From: Laetmonice hystrix
Lineage: Eukaryota
NCBI GenBank assembly: GCA_965235115.1
Contig: OZ249440.1
Span: 11,470,001-11,534,000, forward strand
Direction: 5' to 3'
DNA length: 64,000 nt
The notes under the pieces were generated by a model that ran no database searches, was not told the origin of the DNA, and worked only from the letters and a program-made list of their open reading frames with translations. Below are positions 39,493 through 56,780 of this stretch, one piece after another. The translations under genes were made by a program, and so were the position numbers. Each line of letters begins with the position of its first letter. The stretch's first letter is position 1.

Positions 39493-42400
39493 ATGTTGTC
39501 GGCTTCAAGAATAACAGCTAAATGCCTTAGGTCGGGGGCAGACATCTTACATTACCGATTTGCTTCAAATTTCACAAGAAACGTAAGTGACTGAGTTGTC
39601 AAATTTGCGCTCTTTCGACCGATTCCATCCACCCATGTGCGCAGCCATTACCTAACCGAATGCGTTCGACCACAGCCACCAGATCGCAAGGAAGGGTAAT
39701 CCGTTTTCCAAATACAAGTGCTATAATATCTAGAAGCTGCGGAGTAAGTTGCCTTGTCCAAACTAAAAGTTAGGCGATGCCGCTGGGCATATTTTCGCGG
39801 CGATGACGGTGGCCGGTGAAGCGACACCACCAGCCAGCGAGAACGCAACCCGTGACTGGCCAAAATCTGAAGCCGTGTGAAGGTGGTTTCACGGTCACTT
39901 TAAATCTCATTGTGATAGACAGATTGAGTCGCTTGGTGGAGGGGCTACACGCACGTAGCAATGAGAACGGGAATTTTTATCGAGTTGATTATGGTTATAG
40001 CGGGCTAAAATTTGTTTAAAGTGGATAAACAACTTGAGGTGCTTAGTAAAGCGGAGGCTGTGATCCTGGGCGATAATTGGGGATTTCCGGGCGCGGTCTA
40101 CCGGCTGTACCACGTGGTTGTCTGGCGCGGGACAGTTCATGCGGGTGTTCGACAAAGCTGATTCAATAATGCCTAACACAATGCAATTTTTCGATAATTG
40201 TAGCATGTGCAGTTGACTAAGCTAGAAAGAAAAATCCAATGCCTACAGAAAATATTGTATGGCCCAGATCATTATACTACGAATGCCACTGACTAAGTTC
40301 CACAAAGAAAAGAATGGACAATCGAATCATCATCAGCCCCCCCCCCTAAAAACCTCTATCCTGCCCCTTCTCTGGACTAAGTATTCATAAATACACTTAA
40401 AGTTTGAGGTCATCTTCAAGGGGGGGGGGAATGAATTCAACTTATTCAAATCAATCGTAGCTATCTACAGATCAAGTTTAGGGCTGAAGTGAACTTTTTT
40501 GATGAGTGATAAGTGCTGATCAATTTGTAAATTGCTTACTACAAGAGTAGTATTTTGTATCACATTTTACGACAAGATACTGAAAATGGGTACTGACAGT
40601 GACACATTGACTAATAATATTCTATGATCTGTGAGACTAATAATATTCTATGATCTGTGATGTAGGCCCCATCCAGTAAATATTTTTATTTTATTTTCAG
40701 GCACCTGCTCTTCTCAGTTGTAATTCTTATAATGGATTTGTGTCACATAGATTTTAGTAAGTATAAATGATAAACATACTGGGTTATCAATGTCCCAATG
40801 ATGCAGCTTCAGTACATTGAAGTTAGACAGCATTCAGTTTCATTTTCATGGCTGTAAGACATTGAGATCGCTAATTATCTGCTAGAAAATAAAAGAAGTT
40901 TTTCTGCTGCAAATTCAAGGAATTTTGGTAGAAATTTTACAGTATTTGCAAGTGGTCTTCTGGAAGTTTTTTTTAAATAAAGCATTTTCGTGGTTTAGGT
41001 TTGGCACTGAAATGTCAAAACCATAAAATGAGGTTTAATACTCAGATTAGTAACCCATCAGTCGTGACGTGTCATACTTCATTAATGATAGTCTTTATAC
41101 AGTTTTATAAATGACTAGAACTTTTATTTGGCAGTTCTGACAAAGTCAAAGGCCATGTCATTGGTATTGACCTTGGAACCACAAATTCCTGCGTGGCTGT
41201 CATGGAAGGAAAGCAGGCAAAGGTTCTGGAAAATTCAGAGGGAGCAAGAACGACACCATCAGTGGTTGCATTCACAGGGGATGGCGAGCGACTTGTGGGC
41301 ATGCCAGCTAGACGGCAGGCTGTCACCAACTCTGAAAACACACTATATGCAACAAAGCGGCTGATCGGTCGGAGATTTGATGATCCTGAGGTAAAGAAAG
41401 ACATGTAAGTATAACTTTTGCTGAGTATGAACCATTATACATGTATTATGTATTATTACTGAAAGCAGGTGACTTTGATTCAATCCTCCTCATAGGTTAT
41501 TCGTCTCTGGAAGATCAAACACTTAGACAGTTTGAAATCGCAGTAAAATGTGAACAGAAGATTTTGAAGGAATCTTAACAGGTTAAAAATCGATACATAT
41601 CCATGAATCCCACTTTATCCTGATTTATAGAACTTTGTAGGAGATGCTGTTCCTGTGACGATATTAACTTACCGCCCCAGGCTTACAAAACCATGGAGAT
41701 TGGTCAGGCTCTGAGGAACACATTAATGACAAAAATCCCTACAAAGGCATTTTTTTTTTTTTAAATTGAAAAAAAACTGAAGAACTGAAATCCCACTTGA
41801 GCCAGTGACAAATAAAATGATTGGTTTATAATGTAGAGATTTTTCTTGAACATATCAATGGAGATGCATTCTATCATTTAATGCCTTTCTTGATGATTGT
41901 AACAGTGCCTACTATCTTTGTGGGAGCTATCCATCACTTCCCTTGGTTCTACGAGGAGAGCTAAATCTAGATTCCTTTCCCACGTTGGGGTATTTCTCGG
42001 TAAACCCAGGGTAGTTTATAAGGGTTGGCAGAAAGATGTCCTGGGATCCTCTCTCGGAAATGATTGACTGGGTGACAGGGAGGAGACTGAGAATGTTTTT
42101 GAGGTAGCCTCAGACATTGCTGAGGAGGAACGCCAATTTGGAGTGCTCAGTCAGTGAAGTCTAGGGGCGTGATTAGCAGCGCTTCTGAAAGAAATTTTGC
42201 GGGCGCTCTCAGTTCATGAACTGATGCCTGTATATTTACGAGGTGAGAAATTGACCACTGGCAACCACTGATAGAGGAATGTGGTTTACCTAGAGTTATT
42301 GCTGTTTAGGTGATGATGTTTATTTACCGCCCCAGACTTACTAAAACTATGGAGATTGGTCAGACTCTGATAAACAGCATTTATCTTGGCTCTGCCTTGG

Positions 42401-56780: not shown

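Follow-up and report, generated by a model that had tools for sequence, protein, structure and literature searches.

Twenty-five box C/D snoRNA units of six families in the introns of HSPA9, the mitochondrial Hsp70 gene of Laetmonice hystrix

Can one protein-coding gene, here that for the mitochondrial Hsp70 chaperone HSPA9 (mortalin), provide an animal with a whole set of guides for ribosomal RNA (rRNA) methylation? This question is raised by a stretch of 64,000 nucleotides (nt) from Laetmonice hystrix (GenBank assembly GCA_965235115.1, contig OZ249440.1, positions 11,470,001 to 11,534,000 of the forward strand), referred to as the window, whose positions are used throughout. An initial annotation had described HSPA9 as a multi-family host of about 25 intronic box C/D small nucleolar RNA (snoRNA) genes with up to eight copies in one intron. 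This description proved accurate: 25 snoRNA genes of the box C/D class, belonging to six families, all of them on the plus strand and all intronic in HSPA9, are distributed over eight of the 14 mapped introns. The existence of the unusually dense snoRNA hub is confirmed and the hub is probably functional. We consider it likely, with a probability of roughly 0.75, that HSPA9 pre-mRNA has a second role, namely as the RNA from which 25 box C/D snoRNAs encoded in its introns are derived.

The host is an intact HSPA9/mortalin orthologue on the plus strand, located at about 39.5–56.8 kb of the window. Human mitochondrial Stress-70 was the top match of two exon translations (E values 7.6e-45 and 1.7e-34), with DnaK, BiP and Hsc70 ranking below it, and 15 exons (exons 2–16, 41135–56780) are joined via GT-AG borders into a single open frame that spans 651 codons and is closed by a stop. 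The borders of the region 41405–56068 coincide exactly with the 5' end of the first intron that contains snoRNAs and the 3' end of the last such intron.

The units were defined by Rfam searches at gathering and relaxed thresholds, repeat finding, C/D scans and family alignments. Family A, the SNORD31-type, comprises eight units that all reside within one intron of 4,042 nt (41649–45367). These are A1 (41649–41720; relaxed Rfam, alignment), A2 (42303–42376; relaxed Rfam, alignment), A3 (42981–43053; relaxed Rfam, 32.4 bits to RF00089), A4, A5 and A6 (43367–43444, 43822–43898 and 44271–44348), recognized by repeat finding as units one to three of a recent 455-bp tandem triplication, and finally A7 (44682–44754) and A8 (45293–45367), both from relaxed Rfam searches. 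The four members of family B were found with Rfam and are distributed over three separate introns, one with B1 (48285–48363), one with B2 (48738–48815) and one with the pair B3 and B4 (49493–49571 and 49797–49874); they are double guides combining SNORD36- and SNORD19-type elements. Family C is of the SNORD56-type, with the two copies C1 (46195–46278; C/D scan) and C2 (52362–52432; pattern, alignment). Two further families with two copies each alternate in the order D1-E1-D2-E2 in a single intron of 1.65 kb: D1 (50329–50397) and D2 (51038–51107) are short C/D RNAs detected by C/D scan, while E1 (50692–50774; alignment), in which the terminal stem is separated from the boxes, and E2 (51321–51396; relaxed Rfam) are of the SNORD126-type. 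All seven units of family F, the SNORD82-type, lie within one intron of 2,784 nt (53433–55726): F1 (53433–53507; alignment), F2 (53802–53876), F3 (54274–54348), F4 (54584–54661), the loop of which is 3 nt longer, F5 (54976–55050; repeat finding), identical to F1 in its body and with about 22 nt of common 5' flank, F6 (55304–55378; relaxed Rfam), with CCGA as D' box, and F7 (55649–55726); F2, F3, F4 and F7 were found with relaxed Rfam searches and the family model. The multi-unit introns, all with GT-AG borders, carry eight, two, four and seven units, respectively, and thus qualify as intronic clusters.

A strict C/D scan returned 11 matches on the plus strand, all of them within HSPA9 and none elsewhere on the plus strand of the window, and Rfam searches at relaxed thresholds yielded many C/D matches across the HSPA9 region, again exclusively on the plus strand. 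With covariance models for families A, B and F, the window yielded no matches beyond their own loci except for two weak ones across families, to D1 and F4. A weak Rfam match at 41825–41897 lacks the boxes and was rejected as a snoRNA.

C and D boxes are present in 25 of 25 units with at most one deviation per box, D' and C' boxes are usual, and terminal stems of 4–10 bp join the 5' and 3' ends. The Rfam check that had been proposed for these introns places B1 (34.2 bits), B2 (30.7), B3 (35.5) and B4 (42.7) above the gathering threshold of SNORD36 (RF00049, 30 bits), and leaves the other families below theirs: the best scores for SNORD31 (RF00089), SNORD82 (RF00158) and SNORD126 (RF01168) were 32.4, 34.3 and 27.1 bits at thresholds of 40, 43 and 55 bits. 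The SNORD31-, SNORD82- and SNORD126-like copies score 23–34 bits, and their guides and D' boxes align to the Rfam consensus, as the guide with its box does in the SNORD36-type copies. Families A, F and E therefore appear to be functional equivalents of SNORD31, SNORD82 and SNORD126, short of a formal assignment to these Rfam families.

The predicted targets of the units were established against the rRNA of the same genome. Its ribosomal DNA (rDNA) arrays were located with a conserved 18S probe, and one unit, delimited with Rfam, consists of an 18S gene of 1,836 nt, a 5.8S gene and a 28S gene of 4,362 nt. Seven guide elements form box-anchored Watson-Crick runs of 10–12 nt with the own 18S or 28S rRNA, a length reached by 0–2 of 300 shuffles each, and in families A, B, C, E and F the fifth nucleotide upstream of box D or D' falls on the predicted site (+5 rule). 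The complementarity of 10–12 nt claimed earlier for five families thus holds for the genome's own rRNA. The family A guide pairs over 11–13 bp with 28S rRNA and targets G3463, which is predicted to be equivalent to human 28S Gm4196 (SNORD31) at the CUGGGGCGGUA site. In family B, the D guide (12–16 bp) is directed to 18S A633 and the D' guide (9–12 bp) to 18S G648, corresponding to human 18S Am668 and Gm683, so that the SNORD36 and SNORD19 specificities are predicted for one RNA; the two human sites are 15 nt apart (PMC11550049), and the spacing of A633 and G648 is equal. The family C guide (11–12 bp, 12 nt in C1) points to 18S C482, which corresponds to human Cm517 (SNORD56) with the same offset of 35 as A633 and G648. 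For family F, a D' guide of 12 bp predicts 18S A1645, the equivalent of human 18S Am1678 (SNORD82); here the own 18S rRNA reads AUUACGUCCCUG versus AUUAAGUCCCU implied by the Rfam SNORD82 consensus, and the F guide has the matching G.

Family E pairs over 12–14 bp with 28S rRNA and is predicted to address A964, the site of human 28S Am1323 (SNORD126). It had initially been taken for the counterpart of U18 (SNORD18), an identity that we reject, as its spacing selects the A that precedes the U18 site (Am1326) by 3 nt. The spacing between guide and D' box, GUUUCA-N-CUGA, is that of SNORD126, and the best Rfam scores are 27.1 bits for SNORD126 and 24.0 bits for U18. The human sites Am1323 and Am1326 are separated by 3 nt (PMC11550049), as are A964 and the U18-type site A967 in L. 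hystrix. The exact pattern used for a canonical U18-type gene (a C box, then GUCCGUGUUUC immediately ahead of UGA) had no match in the whole genome; the neighboring U18 site may have a variant guide or none.

The sixth family had been reported as C/D units, and both copies of family D do carry C and D boxes, although a convincing target did not emerge. D1 has a guide gap of 2 nt and matches 28S rRNA (G2335) over only 9 nt, a length that 11 of 300 shuffles attained; for D2, with its diverged guide, the same procedure gave no target. Trials with the human SNORD50, SNORD55 and SNORD87 sites led to no convincing assignment either. The body of family D is SNORD31-like (23.4 bits), and the family A model matches D1 with an E value of 0.0017. 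In our reading, family D is either an orphan or a branch of the SNORD31 type that is in decay.

Two further antisense elements were noticed. In F1–F7, an invariant 9-nt element, UUACUGGGA, abuts the UUGA D box; it is complementary to positions 1610–1618 of the own 18S rRNA and points to A1614, and an anchored run of this length was reached by 8 of 300 shuffles. Position A1614 (approximately human A1647) is absent from the human methylation table (PMC11550049). In A4–A6 (43367–44348), the D-guide region is 5 nt longer and forms 12 Watson-Crick pairs and one G-U pair with positions 210–222 of the own 18S rRNA, which puts U212 at position 5, and A7 can pair there too, though in a shifted register; since this stretch is rich in A and T, the significance of the duplex is uncertain. 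It is a tentative and rather doubtful idea that new specificities arise within the hub by in-situ duplication, with the A1614 element of family F, the U212 duplex of A4–A6 and family D, en route to a new target, as cases in point.

Constraint on the individual units is evident from a comparison of the copies. Within families, snoRNA bodies are 72–100% identical, whereas flanks 10–90 nt away from the units are 0.53–0.61 identical versus 0.54 ± 0.05 for random intronic 80-mers, the recent 455-bp triplication A4–A6 being the exception. In the alignments of families A, B and F, the invariant columns are boxes and guides. The terminal stem of family B shows changes on both sides in seven of ten pairs, and 90% of its cells are paired compared to 27–50% when the partner is slid by 1–3 columns; its covariation score was reached by 0 of 500 shuffles. 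The same pattern, though weaker, is seen for the terminal stem of family A, with 95% of cells paired and three compensatory pairs, including compensatory changes in A2. Conserved bodies within flanks at background level, together with boxes, guides and stems that are invariant or covary, imply that every unit is subject to selection or to gene conversion. The arrays arose via repeated local tandem duplication, and the triplication of A4–A6 represents the latest round.

Among the alternatives, the one that survives best holds that most copies are dead duplicates, with one or few per family, e.g., those with a 3' splice site about 80 nt away, giving rise to stable snoRNAs while the rest are by-products that have not yet decayed. 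Family D, with the guide gap of D1 and the differing guide of its second copy, illustrates such decay, several copies have variant boxes, minisatellites and dispersed repeats testify to unstable introns, and expression of the copies is deduced from sequence. We nevertheless regard this explanation as unlikely, since, the youngest copies aside, the flanks are at background level, in contrast to the invariant or covarying boxes, guides and stems, and since the in-snoRNA differences listed for another individual sit in the variable loop of A8 and not in a box or guide. The short-read DNA contigs in question cover 41400–47300 with even depth across exons and introns and differ from the window at about one position per 100 nt; among the differences listed (16 more are not), the only ones inside a snoRNA are those in the A8 loop. 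These independent contigs of the species also corroborate the assembly, except in the 455-bp repeats, where they are fragmented.

In the reading that we prefer, with HSPA9 pre-mRNA as the common precursor, the units would be co-transcribed with HSPA9, the core proteins of small nucleolar ribonucleoproteins would assemble on their C/D kink-turns, and the RNAs would be freed by splicing, debranching and exonucleolytic trimming, all of which are steps of the established biogenesis of intronic C/D snoRNAs. A8 ends 79 nt and B1 84 nt upstream of the respective 3' splice site, and such a distance is classically regarded as optimal for C/D snoRNAs in introns. The introns with two to eight units would call for an extra endonucleolytic cut in the spacers or for splicing-independent processing, as in intronic clusters of plants and Drosophila, and it is in this sense that the HSPA9 arrays, termed polycistronic in the initial annotation, may be processed. 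Absent such extra cleavage, snoRNA-capped long RNAs would form (PMC11028025). A second explanation has the multi-unit introns mainly yielding such small nucleolar long non-coding RNAs, or acting in cis on HSPA9 splicing or expression, instead of serving as methylation guides: paired intronic snoRNAs can protect the RNA between them (PMC11028025), and two to eight units per intron are available here. We judge it very improbable, because the strongest constraint is placed on rRNA-complementary guides at conserved methylation sites while the spacers are unconserved. In the 100 nt on either side of the units, no k-mer was enriched over intronic background, hence no sign of promoters of their own. 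In nematodes and plants, own-promoter snoRNA genes are numerous. Independent transcription from merely intronic positions, as suggested for intronic snoRNAs of other invertebrates, e.g., silkworm (PMC3089462), is scarcely credible for L. hystrix in view of the missing k-mer enrichment in the flanks, their lack of conservation and the location of 25 of 25 units on the sense strand of the host.

Is HSPA9 the only source of these guides in the genome? The 627 Mb assembly (35 contigs) was searched with exact patterns consisting of C box plus guide, and the guides of families A, B, E and F were found in snoRNA context only in HSPA9. The family A pattern gave eight matches in HSPA9 and four GC-rich, uninspected ones elsewhere, with about eight chance matches expected, and in a genome scan with the SNORD31 model seven copies from intron 2 ranked at the top. 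The pattern for family B guide plus D box has four matches genome-wide, all in HSPA9 (pattern search and BLAST). Seven matches to the family F pattern lie in HSPA9 and one decoy elsewhere; the latter, a SNORD82-guide match at locus L023 on another contig, was rejected as it lacks a D' box, is followed by a poly-C run and has no Rfam match. Family E yielded two matches in HSPA9 and two non-snoRNA matches (L041, L044), which were discarded for want of D boxes and stems. HSPA9 thus seems to be the only source in this genome of the rRNA methylation guides of at least four families (A, B, E and F).

Several observations weigh against the proposed precursor role and against exclusivity. The sequencing runs found are three from one sample with DNA-like contigs, none of them recorded as RNA. 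The endonuclease step is an assumption for animal C/D arrays, and the majority of units are distant from the branch point, a position from which processing of vertebrate snoRNAs is inefficient. Boxes deviate in A1, the C box of which is UGACGA, in the D' box CUUA of three A copies, A1 among them, in the D box UUGA of all seven F copies, and in family C, where the C box is UGAUG followed by U (C1) or C (C2). By inference, the UUGA box of family F would swap a G-C pair for a G-U wobble in the second stem of the kink-turn, a reading that rests on the known kink-turn model. Only four copies, B1–B4, passed an Rfam gathering score. Exclusivity was derived from exact patterns that guides with one changed letter would escape, and the family C pattern is unspecific, with 17 matches versus ten in the control; four of its 15 matches outside HSPA9 were inspected and all were negative (L045–L048, rejected because D boxes and stems are lacking).

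In order to trace the history of the hub, nine other HSPA9 loci were assembled from protein searches at the exon level and contig look-ups, and exon mapping revealed that several of them keep equal intron positions. In this survey, which had been suggested at the outset, units of families A, B, D, E and F were found in none of the nine loci by motif scans, C/D scans and three models, and only the SNORD56-type recurs. It is present in three of the nine loci, with one to four copies and with the same guide, AAUUUUUCGUCA, directly after a UGAUG-N C box: L035 has two copies (6861–6927 and 9433–9489), L036 four (near 10563, 16490, 17030 and 18034), two of which share one intron, and L032 one. The introns that are occupied differ from species to species. 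The SNORD56-type units of all four taxa have in common an unusual C box, UGAUG plus a non-A letter, and a GUGC/GCAC-type stem. One L036 copy possesses a canonical CUGA D' box where C1 has the degenerate CCGU and C2 CAGA, which confirms the C482/Cm517-type target. The occurrence in three other taxa indicates that the association of SNORD56-type guides with HSPA9 is older than the lineage of L. hystrix. The original proposal that this lineage had recruited unrelated guides into HSPA9 finds support for families A, B, E and F, which are absent from the nine loci, and falls for the SNORD56-type; judged by the loci compared, the families other than the latter look as if they were recruited or retained in this lineage only. 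We searched the literature and found neither a paper linking invertebrate HSPA9 (Hsc70-5) with snoRNAs nor a published snoRNA survey for the spiralian group.

Chaperone genes are already known as snoRNA hosts, HSPA8 for instance harboring SNORD14. That the host is a housekeeping gene with strong expression would suffice to explain the location of the hub; the link between mitochondrial proteostasis and ribosome modification that had been inferred from it comes down to co-location. Vertebrate HSPA9 itself hosts U63 (SNORD63), which in chicken is found in intron 11 (PMC2653536). That is one snoRNA with another target, in 28S rRNA, compared to 25 units in L. hystrix, and a SNORD63-type guide was not found in the HSPA9 gene studied here, where family C shows only a weak match: SNORD63 is the second-best Rfam match of C1 with 18.4 bits and an E value of 0.29. 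Vertebrate SNORD63 could descend from the SNORD56-type unit of HSPA9 through a change of target while the host stayed the same, or the resemblance could be coincidence.

In animals, introns mostly carry one snoRNA each. The human hosts, among them SNHG1 for SNORD31, RPL7A for SNORD36, GNL3 for SNORD19, NCL for SNORD82 and NOP56 for SNORD56, are indeed others than HSPA9, as the initial annotation had stated; the human counterparts are spread over six hosts, mostly with one snoRNA per intron, whereas here they are united in one gene. Human SNORD31, SNORD36, SNORD19, SNORD56, SNORD126 and SNORD82 have the same predicted rRNA sites as the units described here (PMC11550049). The combined SNORD36 and SNORD19 specificities reside in separate RNAs in human, and the SNORD82-type units differ from human SNORD82 by their D box UUGA and by the second conserved antisense element. 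Many C/D snoRNAs per transcription unit, including tandem paralogues, are likewise a feature of GAS5, SNHG1 and SNHG14 (SNORD115/116), but these are non-coding and contain one snoRNA per intron, in contrast to the present host, which encodes an essential protein and has arrays inside single introns.

Intronic snoRNA clusters have already been described in rice and Drosophila, with several sense-strand snoRNA genes per spliceosomal intron and mixed families, comparable to the D-E-D-E arrangement (PMC3089462, PMC11028025), and the HSPA9 hub is therefore a variation of a known organization. The Drosophila clusters are mostly H/ACA (PMC3089462), whereas all HSPA9 units are C/D. The hub further differs from the rice and Drosophila clusters in comprising 25 units in eight introns, homogeneous arrays of seven to eight copies and a mitochondrial chaperone gene as host. 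Several units per intron imply processing beyond simple exonucleolytic trimming. Most work on the release of snoRNAs from multi-snoRNA introns concerns plants and yeast, and the locus, if expressed, would offer a natural animal system for the release of several C/D snoRNAs from one intron. Expression of the units would also mean that six conserved rRNA methylations, at sites including the peptidyl-transferase P-loop region and the vicinity of the decoding center, hang on one RNA polymerase II unit from which the essential mitochondrial Hsp70 is made as well, so that guide genes would be consolidated to an extreme degree. There is ample documentation that snoRNAs switch hosts (e.g., PMC13736004); the locus documents such switching together with local amplification in a spiralian-type genome, and for the SNORD56-type guide an older, recurrent association with HSPA9 is apparent.

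The exon borders of HSPA9 were set by tblastn against compact relatives in combination with GT-AG sites. A candidate exon 1 with the presequence MLSASR... was taken from the open reading frame listing (39493–39590, the 3' end not being a mapped border). Exons 2–16 (mapped exons E1–E15) follow on the plus strand at 41135–41404, 45447–45571, 45712–45785, 46027–46133, 47249–47411, 47744–47836, 48448–48657, 49043–49132, 49275–49412, 50145–50249, 51901–52018, 52729–52823, 53192–53284, 56069–56209 and 56646–56780; exons 2 and 8 are additionally backed by protein matches, and exon 16, defined by open reading frame and GT-AG site, encodes a Ser-rich tail and contains the stop codon.

Some minor observations concern the snoRNA-bearing introns. 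Four clustered differences at 45333–45337 in the contigs of the other individual turn the A8 loop into the A4 type, which suggests that array members underwent gene conversion or that a contig was wrongly placed. The depth of short-read contigs is raised 5- to 20-fold at 41991–42187, 42385–42581, 44946–45142 and 46719–47112, pointing to dispersed repeats (transposon fragments) in these introns. Two minisatellites are present, one after E2 (51434–51819; 11 units of 35 bp) and one after C2 (52443–52656; 4.7 units of 46 bp). Both begin at or inside snoRNA 3' ends, their first degenerate copies overlapping the 3' parts of the snoRNAs, and when they are subtracted, the 3' splice site would follow E2 at about 118 nt and C2 at about 71 nt. 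With regard to the rDNA, 18S genes occur at at least 17 places in the genome (contigs C1, C5, C17, C30 near the contig start, C12, C13, C24 and others); those on contig C13 form a tandem array with a spacing of 19–29 kb, and several 18S copies lie no more than 30 kb from contig starts.

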